From: Laetmonice hystrix
Lineage: Eukaryota
Assembly: GCA_965235115.1 (NCBI GenBank)
Contig: OZ249445.1
Span: forward strand, 10,044,001 to 10,108,000
Reading direction: 5' to 3'
DNA length: 64,000 nt
The notes under the pieces were generated by a model that was not told the DNA's origin, searched no databases, and was given only the letters and a program-made list of their open reading frames with translations. Of the stretch, positions 25,401 through 35,278 are shown piece after piece; positions within the stretch are counted from its first letter, which is position 1; each line of letters begins with the position of its first letter. The position numbers and the translations under genes are program-made.

Positions 25401-28400
25401 TTTGTCATTAAAATAATTCAGAATAAATCAGCTTTACAATTTGCTCCCCAATCCTTGCCTAAGCTGTCACCTGCTCTGGTCCCATTACAGCGTCTTTAAC
25501 ACTGATGAATGCCAATCTTTCCCTGCATTTCTGTCTCTACAGGTTTCCTGAGCACAATTAATTCCACCATCAATGCTGGATCCTTTATAATCCCAATTGG
25601 ACTGCAACACTCGTCGACCTTGAACCAAGGTCTTCCAGCATCTCAGGCAACCACCCATACCACACAGATCATTTCATCAGAGCCACTGAAATTTAGATAT
25701 TGTCCCTATACTGTTACCAGTCTCCCTGACCATTTCAGAGCTTCCACTTTATGACACATTGATAACCCATATAAGTTTATGAATTTTAAAAAAGTATTGC
25801 TTACTGACAGTCATAAATGTAATGTATAATGCGCTCACTTCAATTACCCAGAAATGAGCTCACGTTCAGACTGTATGCACAGGGGTACTGTATCGTATTA
25901 AAACACAGCACAACAACCCCTTATTTTCTCCACCAATAAACTCTGTATACATGTACATAAAAAAAATCAACCTAAATTGCCAAAATAGCGCCATTCCAGT
26001 ATCTAGATACAGATACTGAGATAGTGTACAATGTACCTGCTTGCACTTTCTATGTCCAGCCAACTACCCCAGACTGCTAACTCGCCTGTCTGGGCTTTTG
26101 TGACGTTTTCTTGTGCTACTCAAGTAGACAAGGCCGTTACCACTTACCGCCTACCCCACCCAACTGCACTTATACACGGCTCCCAATCATAGTGATGTAG
26201 AGGAAATAAGTTGGTCACGGCTTCTCCACAACTCCATCAATGCACAGCAGTGCGTGAGGAATGTGACCGACACGTGTGTCACGAACTGAAGAGCTGGCCG
26301 AATGTACCTCAGCAACCAAGGCTGATGACCTGTGTCCACTGCCAATGACCACTGGTCATTTATGGTATGCGGCAACCAGCAAAATTTTATATTACCCCCT
26401 CCCTGTCCCCACATACAAGCACCCCCCCCCCCCCCCCAACACACACACCTCCCTCCCTCTGTCTCAGAAAGTGAGAACTTACTAGGGAAGGCAAAATAAG
26501 TGTAGTCCTGACTGTATTGTTTTGGACTTGGAGCCGTAATGTTGCTAAGGACCACACCTAGAAACGACCGCTATTCATGGCTGGACTGATGTTCAAACAT
26601 GCCATAAATAAACCATGGTTCAGCCTGGCTGTAAAAATGAACCACCTTCCCACTTCCTCCTTCACCACCAGGAGCCAGTAGCTGTGAAATACTTTCCTGC
26701 CTCGCCTGATAAAATATAAGTGTCTGTCAGTCTGTGACTTGACAGTTCGACACTAGCATTGACCATCTGAGACTGGCTTTACCCAGTAATATATACAGAC
26801 AAAAGAATATTTCCTCAATGTACATTAGTATTCTACTGCTATTATTTTAAGCGACATACAAACTTCAATCCTTCATGGCCTGATGCAAGGACGTAGTCTC
26901 GAGATTAACCCAATCCGTGGATTTACGCCTATAGTCCTAGTTGCCAAAGTCAGAATTTTCTAGTCTTTTCCCTTTGTTGGAGACTGGCCCTTACTTCGCT
27001 GGACAAGCACAATAGAATTCAGTTAAACATGACTACAAAACCCAACCTTAAATCTAGCCTAGAGTGTAAGTTAAGCCATTCTTGGGATAAACTTCACAAA
27101 ACGTTCTTGCATCCGGCCATCAATGTTTTTCATGCTGTCAGTGTGACCACAACTACCGGCAAGTTTGTTGTTGATCCCCGCCTGTGAACAGACGCATTAT
27201 GCTTTGGCCACTTTTGGTCCATCACTTCCTGATGTCCAACTACAATATAACTATCTGACCCTACTGAATAAGTATCTGATCCATAGTCTGGTAGACAAGA
27301 TAGCCATCTCCATATGCTGGTTATGACTGCAGAATAAGACAAAATATTGCAATATTAGATACAAGTCCTTATCACTTTTCCCCATGAGCGAAATGAAAAA
27401 AAATGGGCCATAGTTCACTGAGAATTGCACTCGGTGGTTGATTCTTTCTCAGATACATCTGCCGCCAACCATGATCCTGACCTCATATCTTTGAATGACC
27501 AATTTTAGAGCTCTTCGTCGACCACTTTCAGATATTCCAGTAATTGCAGACAGCACCTGTCGAAAGTTGCCAGCTGGCTTCAAACGTAATAGTGCATTTT
27601 TTTAAATACAATTTCAGGACCCGAACATTACCAAATCTTGCCAGTAGATCCTGTACATATATAAGAACCATAATTTACTGCCTGCAGATTCCACGCCCCT
27701 TCGTATCCCCACGTTCAAAGGCATCTCCCAATCGCTGGAAATCTGCAGAGCATTGTAAACCGAAGAGAAACCACCGAAGGTTGACAGAATGTCTTGCCAA
27801 AGAAAGTCACTACAGCTATAAGCTTCTACCTTGTCCATGAAAAGGCAACATATGACACCTACTAGGCCAGTAATTACAATTTGCATCAAAAATATGTTTT
27901 ATGGTCCTCCACTGAAATAAACTTCATACAAAAAACATTCAACTGGATCAGCAGATGCAGAGTAAAAAACGTGCATGACCTTAAGAAATCTAGTTGCTAG
28001 GGATAACTGGGCAATTCTGAAGCTGAGGCCTTCATAAATGATAAGTGTTTGCTGAACACTGCTGCCCCATGATAGAAGGGATAATGTAATTTTAGACAAA
28101 GATTCACTAATAAACTCCGTCAACAGGATTTCAGCTTGTGTCAGTTATGGTGGCACAAGATTGTTCAATATGAGACGAGTTTTTTTCAGACACGATTTCA
28201 CACACTCGCGGACACCTAGATGGCCGCTATAGAAGTCCACAATTTTTCATGCATGATCTCTTCCAGCAGGGGAAAAAAAATTTACAACAATTTTTTTCTC
28301 CCTGCCTTATCAGATTTTTTCCAACAAAATTCATTGGAACAAACAATTTTTTAAGGCTGGCCCTAGGTCACATTTAAAATACTCACAACAGTCAATAGAG

Positions 28401-28776
28401 ACAACCATTTTCTAAAGGTCTCCTGATGATGTAACTGATCTATCTCTCCTTGAAAGATATTAGCGAGCGCAGCGAGCTGCAAAGCGGCTCGCAAAGTGAG
28501 CTCTATACCCAAGGAGCTGCATACCGTGCATCGATCGGATATGGAAATCCATGGAGGCTTTGGTGGTATTACGGAGCCGGCAAAATTGGAGCAATCTGAT
28601 TGGCTTAAATGGGGTGCCGGCATAAATATGTCATCCTCCAGAGGGCGCTCCGAGCAAGTAGACCGGAAGTGGCGGCCGGTAAACAAGCCATCCACGCTGC
28701 CACGCTGTTTACAGTCGAGTGCACATGTGCGTTTACGGTCCGGTGCACCTTTTCAAAAGGCTTGGTAGCATATATA

Positions 28777-30888
28777 ATGCCACAATGCTCAGCTCTTGGA
28801 TGTACAAATCAAGGAGGCCATAGGTTCCCCACCAGCAAGCCTAAACTAATGAGGCAATGGGTTGTGGCTGTGAGACGAGAGGAGCCAGGGAAAAGGGGTA
28901 AGCTATGGCGCCCTGGACCAGCTGCAAGAGTCTGCTCGGACCACTTTGATGAAAGAGACTACAAAACAATGAACTTTTACGGTAGGTATTTTTCCAGTAA
29001 TGATGGCAGAATAATAATATTGTAGGCCTATAGATGTTCATTGACTCTGTTATATTGTGAAAAGTGGAATGGTATTAATTAATGAAGTACAGTGGCAATG
29101 TCAGTCTCGGTCACTCAACTATCTTTAGGCTTGATCAAGACTGTGGCAATGTTGGCTGTTGAGTGTTGTCTCGGCCTACGACAGACAGGAAAGTTCAAAC
29201 TGTGTTACAAATATTTCAAGTGTGTATTTCCCCTCCCCCCATTCATTTAGGTAACAAACCAGCCTACAAGCAGCTTAAAGCCGATGCAGTTCCTCATATT
29301 TTTCCGTGCTTGGGGAATAGTGCATCACCAAGTAGCAGTGGTAGGGCTATCCGAGCTCAAAGGAAAGACATAAAAGAAAAAGAGAGAGACAGAGAAGGAC
29401 AAGAAGCATGGCATGACATTGGCATGGAGGAGGAGGTATCGACCACACACGACGAGGAACCTAATGGTACAAATAAGTTTTTATTCTTGTTAAATACATG
29501 GAAAAAACATGTTAATGATCAGCCATTGTGACAAGTTTTTCCACTTTCTCACAACTTGGCACATACACCACAGTAAACAACTGATTTGACAAATGCATTT
29601 AATTGTGATGTAAAGTAGATTCAAATTTTAATTACTATTTACTAAATTCTGCCCACACTTTTTATTAACAGAAATGTACAAGAACACAATGATTATAATT
29701 TTACAAGTTGTATTGCTTGATGTAATAACCGTACAATGCTAAATAACTGTCCAGAGTCTTATCCTGTTATTACTGCCTTCCAAACCATCAATTGTATCAC
29801 TACACTCTATATACTCATGAACCAGAAAAATATATTTTCTATGACTTTACCAGATTTTTGTTCAGGATTTCACGCACCTGCAAGAACTACTATTTTTCGC
29901 TGAAACCCCTCATTTCCTTGTTACAGAATCATACGAAGTACAGGAAAGCCATTCTACTTCTGTAGCTGTTCAGACGGATTCCACTTCAGTGCGTCAGTTG
30001 TACAATGCCAAGAGATTTGATGACGACACTATGCATTTCTATACTGGACTAGAAACTTATGAAAAATTTAGAATGGTGTTGGATAGCCTCGGTCGTGCTG
30101 CTCACGTTCTAGTCTACTACTACGGTGTGGAACCGCCCATCTCAGTTGAAGATCAGTTTTTCTTAACACTTATTAAATTAAGAACTCATCCAACAAACAA
30201 GGAGCTGGGAATATTTTTTGGCCTCAATGAAAAGCAAGTGAGCAACGTTTTCATAACCTGGATAAATTTCATGTTTTGTCAGTGGGAAGAAATCGACTGG
30301 TGGCCTTCACGAAAGTTAATACAGTATTATTTCCCTTCAGACTTTCGTTTAAAATTTCCTGCCACAAGAGTTATTGTTGATGGAACTGAGTTTCCTATAA
30401 AGAAACCCAGACAACCCGTTGCACAGCAAGCCACCTTTTCCACATACAAGAACAGAAATACCATGAAAGTTTTAGTTGGTGCAAGTCCAGGTGGTTTGGT
30501 GACCTATGTCTCACCAGCCTATGGTGGGTCAGCTAGTGACCGACAGATAGTGGAACGGTCAAGTCTCCCCCGCATGTGTGACCCTGGGGATGAAATTATG
30601 GCAGACAAAGGCTTCAACGTTGAGGACATGTTCATTCCATACTATGTTGCTATTAATATCCCTACCTTTTTCAAGAAAAAGAACAGGATGTCAAATGAGA
30701 CTGTCATTAAAGACAGGAAAATAGCAAGCAAAAGGGTCCATATTGAGAGGATTATCGGTTTGGCAAAAACATACAAGATACTTCGTGATCCTATGGTGAA
30801 CATGGAATCGTCTCTTGCATCTCGTATTGTAAGAGTTGTTTTTATTTTATGTAATTTTCGCAAGTGTATTGTACCAGAAAATGCCTAA
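28777..30888 (+). CDS. THAP-HTH-DDE (DDE_Tnp_4/Harbinger-type) transposase, 3 exons, ~460 aa
   Basis: join(28777..28981,29251..29466,29927..30888) = 1383 nt with consistent phases (1,1) and GT-AG ends. THAP motifs CSALGC..FP..W..W..VCSDHF..LKADAVPHIF; HTH FFLTLIKLRTHPTNKELGIFFGLNEKQVS; catalytic VIVDGTE / MADKGF / RVHIERIIG. Confidence 0.92.
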
Positions 30889-30992
30889 CTGCAGTTTAGT
30901 TGTGCCTGTCAAAAAGTCAAAAAGTTTTAACATTAACGAAAATTAAGAAATGTCTAAATATATAGGTTGCAGAAAAGAATATTATGGTCTAA

Positions 30993-33900
30993 CTAAAAGT
31001 ACTGATCATAGAACTTGTAAACATGTTTTTGCAGTAGAGCAGGCCTGAAGTAAGTGTGATAAAAGGTGTTAAGCTTGGTGACCATGTCTGTGATGAACTC
31101 CTCATCTCTTGTTATTTTACATACTTTAAAGTCCTTTAAGGTGAAAACACAAAAGTAGCACATTTTTCTACCTGAGCACAAAAGCTGGCCTTGCACTTGA
31201 TAAAAGTACACGTGATTTCTGTCAAGGGTAAGCCCAGAAGTACACTTCTTTAGATATGGCACAGTGACGTGGTCGATTTGCTTGTCCTTGGCAGTGTACG
31301 GACACTTAACCTCGACAATGACTTCAGAATCAATGACTCTGTCAGGTGATGCTGCCAACCACGGAAAGTTTTCTTTTATGTATAGTCCGCATTCTTGTGT
31401 TTTTCCATGCACCTTTTCGAAATACTCCACAGCGACAGACTCGTATGCTTGCCCATAGCTTGTCGCACGACTCCTAAATTCCTTGGGCGATAGCATTTGA
31501 GTCGCGAGCTTTGCCAAATCCCTTCTTACTGTCGATTTTGCAATGCTTCCAAAATTAGAAGACGTGATTCTTTTGGATCTTTCCACCTTCCACAACTTGT
31601 TTCCTGCCTGTCCACGTGTTTTCTGTTCTATTTCTATAGTGTCAGCCTCTGTGATATGTGATATCTGAATAAAAAAATTATTGTGGATAAGAAACATGTA
31701 TAGGCCTATTCGCAACGACCTTCATTAGTAGATCTAAGACAATATATTCAATGGAACAAAATTTCCATATGAATAGGCAAACTTGCTAGTCCTACCTAAT
31801 TTAGATTTCATGCATTAGTGTATGAGTGTAATGTAACAAAATTAATCTACCAGTAGATATAAAGTCATTCTATTATTTCATATCACTTGCTGTAGCCAGT
31901 AAATCAACCTGATCATAATATTAAGCCTATAAGGCGTGTTAAAAAGTACCTTTTCTCTTTTTAAAAAGGCCTCTTCAGACGACATGTCATAGTCATGCAT
32001 AGTGTTGTAAGCATATGGATCCGCAGGCTGGTAGAGTTGCAGCACAGGCATCTTTCCCTCACCCTGAAAATCAATTTTCATACAAGAATCATTCAGGAAA
32101 ACCTTGAAATAATTTTAATGTCTTCTATTGCAGAGTGGCTATATATAGTAAAATATAGTAAAATTCACAGGTCAAGATTCTGATGTATTTGTTACACTAT
32201 TACAATTCATACTATGTACTAATTTTACCTGGAAATTGAGTACTGTGTTTCTGAAATGGTCTGGATAAGCTGGTTGCTGCCTATAATTCTGGGGTCTTGG
32301 GTCATATTCAAACTTCTGGTTGCGCATTTCTTGGATGTGGCATGCTTTCATTGGGGAACCTTTGTAGGGTTTCGTCTGGTGGAAAGTTTGCAATCTCTGA
32401 AATATAATTTATAACAAGGTGAATAAAATGCGTGTCTATGTTGCTTTCCTTTGAGATATTTAGACTCTAAACATAGATCTATATGAAAAGGCTTATTCCA
32501 ACAAAAGAATTTACTGAGAAAAAGGATAATTTGACCAAAATCATGCAAAACAAGTGGGTTACTTTAAAAAAAAATATATTTCATTGTCCAGAGAAGTATA
32601 GGCTAAATTTACCTGTGTACATGTTTGCTCAGTGATTATGTCTCCCTGAGAAGTAAGGCAGTGTATGCCATACAGAACACAGGCCACATGTTTACAGTGT
32701 GCTGCAGGACCCTGACCAGCCGCACACTCACACTGTGCTTCCTGGATCACCTGGTGGTCATCTACAGCCACATCCACCTTATAGGCTACACTCTTTTTCA
32801 TTTCAGCCCATATGCTTCCAGTTAGGTAGAAAATCCCTTTGGCATTGGTTGGTGACATGCGAACAAATCTGAGGTATCTGTAGGAAGAATACAGTGGCAA
32901 TTATTGAATGTCCCCATCTCAACCATGCAAGTATTTTTTACCAGGAGAGTTGATGACCCAACAGGTGTCATTTTCATATATATATGCAAAATTATGTAAG
33001 TAAAGTTTTTATTTTAATTTTGAAATACACAAGACTGAAACTCTTGCCCACAAAGTTGCATTTCACTGAGAAGATATGAGCTTTGAGATAATAAATGACA
33101 TACCTTTGCTTGTATAATTGTTTGATTTTTTCTTCAAACTCCTTGTCCTGGTTCTTAAGGTATTGTAGAATTCTACACATAGGTAAATCAGGCAGTACAG
33201 AACCTGCATGTACATCACTGTAGGTTGATGGCTCAGGCAAGATCATGTCATACTCGTCCTCCATGTCCTGTTCCCTATTTGTCACCTGCATGATGTCAAG
33301 CGACTCAAGCCTGAATATTGAACAAGAAGAATAAAGTGGTACTTTACTAAAAAAAACATGAGGCAGATGCAGAATTTTCAAGGGAGAATCACTAAAGAGA
33401 CGGGGGGGGGGAGCTAGGAAAAAAATTATGTCTACGACTCTCAGCCAGGTAAACCAAGATTCAGTCAATCTATCAGAGTAAAAAATTTTTTTTCAAAGTG
33501 TAGCTAAAAAAAAAGGATATAAGAATCCATTCAGTCAACTGCTGCCTAACACAAAAATAACAAAAGCACCCTTAGTTAAGTTAGGTGTCTCCAGTTTGAG
33601 TTACACTTTTCCATATTTTTTTAATGACACGAAATAGGCCTAAAATGCCTATAATATACATTTCTACATCTGAGTTCAATAGTTCTACTATTTGTATGTT
33701 GGCACTGAATTAACATGATCGTCTAGATCTAGACTTCTTAGCTGTGCCTATTACTAGTAGAAATGCTACAGAAATATGAAAGTTTGAGTGCAACAAAGCT
33801 AAACTTAAGTGCAACACGTGTGACCCCCTGACCCTGACTGAGAGTGAGACAGCAGCAGCAGCATGATGATGCTAATAATTGCCGTTAATTTACTTACCTT

Positions 33901-33998
33901 TCCAAAAGATCCCTTTTCTTGCCAGAACACTTGATTCTTCTTCTTTTTAGCTCTGCTTGTAGCTGTTTCAACGTCCATGATTTGTACTTTGACGACAT
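30993..33998 (-). CDS. SAP - SWIM zinc finger - YqaJ (lambda-exonuclease-like PD-(D/E)xK) protein, 6 exons, ~508 aa
   Basis: complement(join(30993..31664,31950..32063,32229..32396,32613..32877,33104..33310,33898..33998)) = 1527 nt, all GT-AG and phase-consistent. SAP-like WTLKQLQAELKRRRIKCSGKKRDLLERL; SWIM CECAAGQGPAAHCKHV; YqaJ motifs WLAASPDRVI..VEVKCPY and YFYQVQGQL. Confidence 0.9.
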
Positions 33999-35278
33999 AA
34001 TTTCCACGTTGACACGAGTCCTTTGTCTGCCAAGTCACTCACTCACTGGATGCTGCCGGGAGTGAGCGACAATACGTTCGGTACGCCCGCTTGCAGCGCC
34101 GCGGTGCGGCAAAAATGTGCCGGTACCCCATTGCACTGCATCGAAATTCAAATTTCCCAAACACATGGGAATAGATCTACAATTTCAAAACAGATTCCAA
34201 ACATTTAGTGACTTTTCCATTTGATTCTACCTACTATTCACGTCAAATCGCCTGTCGGAAACGTAACGGCCAATCGCTTCTGTTTACAGCCGCTTGACCG
34301 AAGTGAAAATGGTGGAAAACTTAGCCTGCTAGACTGTGGATTTAGAACCCGGTCTGTTGATTTCCACTGTGACGTCACAATATCAGCAGATGCTTTTTCC
34401 AACTGTGACATGACAATATCACCACGGTCGTCATAAGACGACAATAGGCGTTACTAAGTGACCTGTCACTCCCGGTAACTCGATCGATCCCGGCGCCTGA
34501 CTTGGCAGACACCCATTTCAATATCAATGACTATGGAAAGCTGAAACACTGTGCGCGCCCCTGGGTAGCGCCTGAGTCATATTAGTTGAACCTAATTATT
34601 ACGGGAGTTTTCGATATAATAGAACAATTGCAAACATGTGCTGCCACCAGGATGATGTCATAGACCTGTCAACTTTCCTGTCATACTCATTATATGTCAT
34701 ACTCATAGTCCTGTTTTCAGTTACACCAATGTAATGTACGGTCACAGTCACATTATTAAAAAAAAAGCTAACCGCAAACGGCAAAAACCAAAAGAAGAAA
34801 AAACAGACGCATTTTGTCATATATTAACCTCGGTTAACTTTGGCAACATATGCCCACTACCATGCAGTGTCAGTGACATTCTTTGTCCTGAATGTAGTCA
34901 CTAACACTCTCAGTCTCACTAGTCTCAGCCTCGGCTCCGCCTCAGGCCAGCTGGCTGTCACTGGGATTTCATTCATGATTCACTCGTAATTCACGCATCA
35001 ACACTTCACGCATCATCCGTGTGTGGTTCAAAATACACATCTATCCACAAACACACTACACTAATGATATGAAGCAGTATTACATTTGTTTAAGAACGCC
35101 GCAATCAATGGCAATGAATGAGAGACCATACTGAGTGAATGACACGCGGTTCTTGTTGACGGTGTCACTGACATGACATTCGCGGACGGCGAGCGAGGCC
35201 CGAGCCTCATCTCAGCCCACTGTTGATGTCACATTCTGAGCTAATCGAGCCTGATTAAAATGTCTCAGAATCACCTAC

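Follow-up and report, generated by a model that had tools for sequence, protein, structure and literature searches.

A structurally complete and probably recently mobile two-gene ISL2EU transposon nested in an older interspersed repeat of Laetmonice hystrix

Are two tail-to-tail genes in the genome of the animal Laetmonice hystrix genes of the host or genes of a mobile element and, if the latter, what kind of element carries them and how recently has it moved? The genes lie in a stretch of 64,000 nucleotides (GenBank assembly GCA_965235115.1, contig OZ249445.1, positions 10,044,001 to 10,108,000 of the forward strand), referred to here as the window, and all positions without a contig prefix are counted from its first letter. 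Direct reading and scripts run on 28300-34500 place both genes within an element of 5,519 bp at 28611-34129. This element is very probably (about 90 %) a structurally complete, recently mobile autonomous ISL2EU transposon of the PHIS superfamily that lies inside an interspersed repeat older than itself. ISL2EU elements are defined by a 5'-AT-3' target-site duplication (TSD) within A/AT/T (slashes mark joints) and by terminal inverted repeats (TIRs) of 6-259 bp that usually start with GG; they encode a transposase with THAP, helix-turn-helix (HTH) and DDE domains as well as a second open reading frame (ORF) with a YqaJ exonuclease domain, have a mean length of about 4.8 kb and are found in animal hosts only (Han et al. 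2014, PMC4122938; Han et al. 2015, PMC4482050). A 2022 review of fish elements gives the same two-ORF description. All of these features that sequence can test are present here, namely the AT TSD, the GG-initiated TIRs, a THAP-HTH-DDE transposase with an intact catalytic triad and a YqaJ ORF, and the ISL2EU identity given in the original prediction is thereby supported by every published diagnostic feature tested.

The whole unit recurs at unrelated places in the genome. A DNA search of the 627-Mb source assembly found three full-length copies at 99-100 % identity, on contig C11 (the window copy), at C4:15,001,583 and at C21:1,119,825, the last two being near-identical copies of the kind that the original prediction had proposed to look for. 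The three diverge pairwise by 0.27-0.69 %, the sequences around them are unrelated right from the base next to the AT, both ORFs are open at identical lengths in all three, and gene 2 lies within the TIRs in all three. Three near-identical intact copies at unrelated loci argue for recent movement, and segmental duplication was excluded because the flanks diverge at the first base beyond the AT. Taken more widely, the chance that the locus is not a transposon at all, being instead a domesticated pair of host genes, a segmental duplication or an assembly artefact, is negligible. Only the intact reading frames favour it; against it stand the three copies on three contigs with unrelated flanks, the TIRs, paralogous sites that are empty of the element, and contigs from an independent sequencing run that carry it. 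Domestication, which the original prediction had itself raised as an alternative, is refuted by the presence of three copies at different loci. As regards the other wording of that prediction, 'recent' and 'intact' stood, while 'potentially active' is a reading of structure; current activity is suggested by the structure of the element and the identity of its copies.

Beyond the three full-length copies, the assembly holds two old end fragments, one of the left end and one of the right, and older relatives at 77-93 % identity. The left-end orphan (C5:35,594,862-35,596,796; L004/L006) spans element positions 1-1467 and is split by a 471-bp insertion, which is flanked by a 7-bp repeat of element positions 836-842. 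The right-end orphan (C5:30,503,067-30,503,612; L009) comprises 540 bp at 95 % identity. These two orphan ends are 5 Mb apart, in an order incompatible with a single split copy. A genome-wide search with a 22-nt end pattern returned exactly four left and four right ends, and matches with two mismatches were no commoner than in a reversed control. Amplification as miniature inverted-repeat transposable elements (MITEs) was accordingly rejected, as four plus four ends imply a family of very low copy number that lacks MITE derivatives. Contigs from public runs over 30217-32009 show internal deletions (e.g. 30699 to 30820 and 31137 to 31213) and base variants foreign to the three assembled copies, a sign that the sequenced individual may carry additional copies, either allelic or diverged.

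Comparison of filled and empty sites bears on how the element sits in its target. The window copy reads AT directly before GGGGTGCCGGCA at the left and TGCCGGTACCCC directly before AT at the right. The TIRs are 12 bp long with the consensus GGGGT[G/A]CCGGCA, differ from each other at a single position, and start with GG at both ends, as is usual for ISL2EU. At each of the three full-length copies the arrangement is A-AT[element]AT-T(G), and the target in every case is AATTG, not AAATTT. The features at the boundaries are as follows.

28609-28610, unstranded: left copy of the TSD, AT, with A/AT...AT/T flanks in 3/3 copies and a single AT in 29 paralogous empty sites
28611-28622, plus strand: left TIR, GGGGTGCCGGCA, matching the right TIR at 11/12 positions and with the same letters in all copies
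34118-34129: right TIR, reading GGGGTACCGGCA on the minus strand and TGCCGGTACCCC on the plus strand
34130-34131, unstranded: right copy of the TSD, AT, placed by the flanks of the three copies and by the empty-site comparison
28457-28610, unstranded: left part of the host interspersed repeat, outside the element, with at least 268 candidate copies genome-wide
34132 to about 34548, unstranded: right part of the host repeat, outside the element, placed by empty-site copies and contig depth

The repeat that received the element is roughly 500-570 bp long, and sequencing contigs show very high depth over both flanks of the element; as to a tRNA origin of the repeat, no tRNA was detected by ARAGORN. 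All of the uninterrupted repeat copies that were fetched (29/29) read GGCTTAAAT/TGCACTGC (TTAAAT/TGCA), with one AT only, and the empty-site joint of 28608 to 34130 also occurs in contigs of public runs. Given the single AT in empty sites, the target is AATT and the AT is present twice after insertion, so a 2-bp AT duplication within an AATT target fits the empty and the filled sites. Since AT is palindromic, such a duplication and a blunt insertion fit the sequence alike, and it tells against the duplication that insertion of a T...A-ended element into AA/TT, leaving no TSD, would suit the letters equally well. In that Spy-like event the true ends would be T-GGGG...CCCC-A and the middle of the target AA/TT; an empty site TTAAA/TTGCA together with an element taken as 28610-34130 reproduces the filled site exactly, and the sister clade Spy makes no duplication when it inserts between AAA and TTT (PMC4122938). 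Blunt insertion is nevertheless distinctly unlikely, as the same pattern is read in the field as A/AT/T with an AT duplication (PMC4482050), and the identity of the TIRs begins at GGGG, though the flanking T and A are also mutually complementary. Were it true, ISL2EU would stand mechanistically nearer to its sister Spy.

Gene 1, on the plus strand, is predicted to have three exons totalling 1,383 nt (460 codons plus TAA) and encodes the transposase.

28777-28981, plus strand: gene 1 exon 1, the N-terminal part of a THAP zinc finger, C-x4-C...C-x2-H (Pfam THAP, E = 1.4e-10), ending at a GT donor
29251-29466, plus strand: gene 1 exon 2, the end of the THAP domain (AVPHIF box) and an acidic linker, with junction 1 continuous with eight full-length THAP-DDE homologues
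29927-30888, plus strand: gene 1 exon 3, HTH_Tnp_4 (Pfam, E = 1.9e-12) and DDE_Tnp_4 (E = 3.2e-39), with TAA at 30886-30888

The C2CH residues of the THAP domain and its AVPxIF box are both present in the protein, the latter being supplied by exon 2, and the spliced product is colinear with the eight full-length homologues, showing no gap at junction 1. In an alignment of the DDE domain with 17 homologues, which include sequences from molluscs, a priapulid and a nemertean, the triad D151/D226/E273 (numbered within the exon-3 piece) is invariant and lies in the motifs VDGTE, ADKGF and R-x3-E. The closest homologues of the transposase, at 56-76 % identity, share the THAP-HTH-DDE architecture and are encoded next to a YqaJ gene in convergent orientation. 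An AlphaFold2 model of the DDE exon, built from an 18-sequence alignment, was poor, with a mean pLDDT (predicted local distance difference test) of 53.7 and a catalytic core below 50, and a sequence search of the Protein Data Bank (PDB) with the transposase gave no match at E ≤ 1.

Gene 2, on the minus strand, is predicted to have six exons totalling 1,527 nt (508 codons plus TAG) and encodes a SAP-SWIM-YqaJ protein.

33998-33898, minus strand: gene 2 exon 1, SAP DNA-binding motif (Pfam SAP, E = 4.5e-8)
33310-33104, minus strand: gene 2 exon 2, acidic linker, placed by homologue alignment
32877-32613, minus strand: gene 2 exon 3, SWIM-type zinc finger, C-x-C-x9-C-x-H
32396-32229, minus strand: gene 2 exon 4, LQTFH...GSP block, colinear with eight homologues
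32063-31950, minus strand: gene 2 exon 5, linker and conserved PANPY...HDY block, colinear with eight homologues
31664-30993, minus strand: gene 2 exon 6, PD-(D/E)XK domain of the YqaJ/lambda-exonuclease type, with TAG at 30993-30995 (CTA on the plus strand)

Exon 6 matches Pfam YqaJ (E = 1.2e-14), and gene 2 also gave a weaker match to a viral alkaline exonuclease model. By sequence, the nuclease domain also matches solved structures in the PDB, namely 3syy (E = 3.3e-5) and lambda exonuclease 1avq (E = 3.3e-3), and its SPD...E-V-K-CP active-site motif aligns with these solved exonucleases, the D...ExK of the nuclease being in place. The SWIM residues C49, C51, C61 and H63 (numbered within the exon-3 piece) are invariant in 11 homologues, and the Pfam SWIM model scores weakly, under its gathering score, in two full-length homologues. 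A Pfam scan of this partner protein gave no match to Myb/SANT. The spliced product is colinear with eight full-length homologues, without gaps at the junctions.

Across the two genes, all seven introns obey GT-AG, the nine exons contain neither an internal stop nor a frameshift, and at 6/7 junctions the spliced proteins align colinearly with full-length homologues. Reading and scripts thus bear out the original prediction in its anatomy, from the TIRs and the AT TSD to the nine uninterrupted exons of two convergent genes, and they place the stop codons where it did, with the two genes ending at 30888 and 30993. Because the unit of 5.5 kb recurs at two other unrelated loci with the same termini and the same AT flanks, this anatomy is not a product of chance. 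The three copies also differ from one another in an uneven manner. There are 12 variable sites in 2,910 bp of exon against 30 in 2,600 bp of non-exon sequence (Fisher P = 0.0017), the 13 indel events all lie outside exons (P about 6e-5), and the exon changes comprise five non-synonymous and seven synonymous substitutions; the C4 copy has a 7-bp insertion beside the donor of gene 2 exon 2, where the GT is retained. Exons that are poor in changes and free of indels are the pattern expected of copies drawn from a lineage selected for function in both genes.

Several points weigh on the other side of this account of an intact, recently mobile element. Transcription and the splice junctions are predictions made from the DNA sequence alone, and one small run of unknown type gave contigs that are unspliced, DNA-like pieces. 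Junction 2 of gene 1 falls in a variable acidic linker, beyond the reach of the homology check. The contrast between exons and non-exons could be partly inflated by mutation-prone homopolymers and AT-rich runs in the introns. Finally, the sequence is held by a single sample and study, and the empty-site joints seen in contigs may all stem from paralogous copies of the host repeat.

The regulation of the element bears on whether the family might now be at rest. Its two ends differ in base composition from its body, and between the genes lies a short spacer.

28611-28776 (166 bp), plus strand: left end, presumed promoter and 5' untranslated region (5'UTR) of the transposase gene, GC 0.55, CpG observed/expected ratio (o/e) 0.97
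33999-34129 (131 bp), minus strand: right end, presumed promoter and 5'UTR of gene 2, GC 0.59, CpG o/e 1.15, holding the right TIR
30889-30992, unstranded: spacer of 104 bp between the convergent stop codons

The element as a whole has a GC content of 0.39 and a CpG o/e of 0.48, which is below the window average of 0.60. Close to where the two genes end, the sole canonical poly(A) signal is an AATAAA on the minus strand at 30846, inside the coding exon of gene 1, so the transcripts of the two genes may overlap tail to tail, an arrangement that could feed small-RNA control. It is therefore conceivable, at rather less than even odds, that the family is intact yet immobile at present, having transposed recently and since been silenced (e.g. 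by piRNA or methylation) or disabled by subtle inactivating missense changes. Its very low copy number (three complete copies and two fragments, MITEs being absent) points that way; the CpG depletion of its body suggests past germline methylation, and overlapping antisense transcripts would be a natural trigger for small RNAs. Set against such silencing or decay, both ends of the element keep a CpG o/e of about 1, and the retention of both ORFs in three copies, with exons in which changes are few and indels absent, is what a functioning lineage would leave behind rather than free decay.

The pairing of transposase with nuclease extends well beyond this family. Six-frame searches of the source genome, for which identities are given outside the element's own family and its close relatives, returned at least 125 transposase matches at 28-66 % identity and at least 87 YqaJ matches at 25-52 % identity, many of both with open frames. 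Among the best 90 transposase matches, 68 have a YqaJ match no more than 6 kb away, and these linked pairs are overwhelmingly convergent (62 convergent, 6 divergent and 0 on the same strand). The convergent pair is found outside this genome as well: in GCA_022581195.1, 11 bp separate the end of a SAP-YqaJ gene from a THAP-HTH-DDE gene, and the same arrangement occurs in the two ENA contigs that bear the closest foreign transposases, at 73-75 % identity. No convincing match to the element's TIR was found in the nearest foreign locus (L078) or in two others (L076 and L077), where most of what the inverted-repeat scan picked up was AT-rich simple sequence. The source genome thus holds a large and diverse ISL2EU population, and the two-gene unit is ancient and conserved; the persistence of the linkage suggests that the nuclease contributes to the propagation of these elements.

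Some members of this wider population have features of their own. The divergent pairs include those at C7:23.90 Mb, C1:69.83 Mb and C4:32.20 Mb as well as three units of an array at C11:22.36 Mb. Distant ISL2EU-like transposase/YqaJ pairs, at about 33-34 % identity to the proteins of the present element, form head-to-tail tandem arrays, one at C1:26,032,118-26,105,524 with a period of about 6.99 kb and at least eight units, and the other at C11:22,361,664-22,375,960 with a period of 6.04 kb and three units, in which the genes are divergent rather than convergent. Tandem arrays are unusual for cut-and-paste elements. A four-copy ISL2EU-like family (L059-L062, at C3:2.30 Mb, C6:19.73 Mb, C2:40.54 Mb and C11:29.50 Mb) has a transposase that is 47 % identical; its transposase-side terminus is GGGTTCGTGCGATGCG in three copies (GGGTTCGTGCG), preceded by TA or AT, the fourth copy having a truncated or replaced upstream part.

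A working scheme for the element can be proposed. Each CpG-rich end would act as the promoter of one inward-reading gene. The transposase would bind the GG-initiated ends through its THAP and HTH modules; the TIR holds a GGCA core, which we take to be of the kind bound by THAP domains, going by the THAP1 site. The DDE domain, which is RNase H-like, would then excise the element and join its ends to target strands cut 2 nt apart at A/AT/T. The second protein, held on DNA by its SAP and SWIM domains, would act as a 5'-3' exonuclease of the lambda-Exo type, resecting either the donor-site double-strand break or the ends of the excised element and thus leading to homology-directed copying from the sister or homologue; the donor site would thereby regain the element, for a net gain in copies. 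That ORF2 serves resection in this way, favouring homology-directed repair and regeneration of the donor copy, is offered tentatively, as a suggestion somewhat short of an even chance. Two considerations tell against it: the part played by the exonuclease is one that we infer in full, and the DDE enzyme can probably carry out catalysis without a nuclease partner, given that the sister Spy transposes with a single protein (PMC11304231).

Stronger forms of partnership may also be envisaged. It is unlikely that the SAP-SWIM-YqaJ protein is an obligatory and physically coupled partner of the transposase, acting as second-strand nuclease or as a resection factor that gives a net replicative gain. 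If it were, ISL2EU transposition could be reconstituted for the first time with this low-copy family, in which both genes are intact, and such a reconstitution would settle whether the target is cut with a 2-nt stagger or bluntly as by Spy. A more specific version draws on Tn7, in which the PD-(D/E)XK protein TnsA cuts the non-transferred strand for the DDE protein TnsB. By analogy, the YqaJ protein might be the catalytic subunit of a heteromeric transposase that cuts the non-transferred (5') strand. The tight and ancient linkage of the two genes across families at 30-66 % identity agrees with such a role, as do the intact PD-(D/E)XK motif and the lack of an established mechanism for second-strand cutting by PHIS and IS5 enzymes. 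It is nonetheless very unlikely, for the domain is of the processive lambda-Exo/YqaJ exonuclease type and not the restriction-endonuclease-like type of TnsA, and single-ORF Spy transposases of the sister clade are fully active alone in human cells (PMC11304231), which makes a TnsA-like function less likely than resection.

For genome annotation, the answer to the opening question is that both gene models are transposon genes and not host genes. The original prediction described ISL2EU as mechanistically uncharacterised, which agrees with what was found: no functional or structural study of ISL2EU turned up in the literature searched, and no solved structure is similar in sequence to the transposase. 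ISL2EU is thus among the few eukaryotic cut-and-paste groups for which neither reconstituted transposition nor a structure was found in the literature, and three near-identical intact copies with defined ends and a verified empty site are convenient starting material for work on it. The family could also help to ask why, in many lineages, a nuclease of the lambda-Exo type and a DDE transposase have remained linked. The novelty of an intact copy had been rated too high, however, as 25 ISL2EU families were catalogued in 2015, of which 12 were 'potentially active' with both ORFs intact (Han et al. 2015, PMC4482050).

The element may finally be set beside the systems that it most resembles. Its nuclease shares the YqaJ/PD-(D/E)XK fold family, with D...ExK, with lambda Red Exo, the Laribacter prophage exonuclease (1avq and 3syy) and the herpesvirus alkaline nucleases; in contrast to that group, the domain is here fused to eukaryotic SAP and SWIM domains and carried by a cut-and-paste transposon, and a gene for a partner single-strand annealing protein (SSAP, or annealase) is not evident. 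With PIF/Harbinger elements (Harbinger3_DR, PIF, Ping/Pong) it has in common related DDE_Tnp_4 and HTH_Tnp_4 domains, the possession of two genes and AT-rich targets. Those elements differ in making a 3-bp TWA duplication, in having a DNA-binding Myb/SANT partner rather than a nuclease, and in a transposase that lacks THAP; membership was rejected, as the duplication here is 2-bp AT and the partner is SAP-SWIM-YqaJ. Spy, the sister of ISL2EU, is the closest transposase clade and likewise uses a palindromic A/T site (AAA/TTT, compared with AA(T)/(A)TT here), and cgSpy is experimentally active (PMC11304231). Spy elements, however, have one ORF and lack the zinc-finger domain, the nuclease partner and the TSD, and membership of Spy was rejected in view of the two ORFs, the THAP domain and the AATTG target. 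It is with ISL2EU that the agreement is closest, in that the 12-bp TIR is inside the known size range, the length of 5.5 kb is near the mean, the host is an animal and nothing essential is different. Han et al. state the role of ORF2 to be unknown, and neither SAP and SWIM domains N-terminal to the nuclease nor a strictly tail-to-tail gene pair separated by 104 bp was seen in the literature descriptions compared. The anatomy of the element adds no new concept, and the element itself is a further family of an already described type, ISL2EU.

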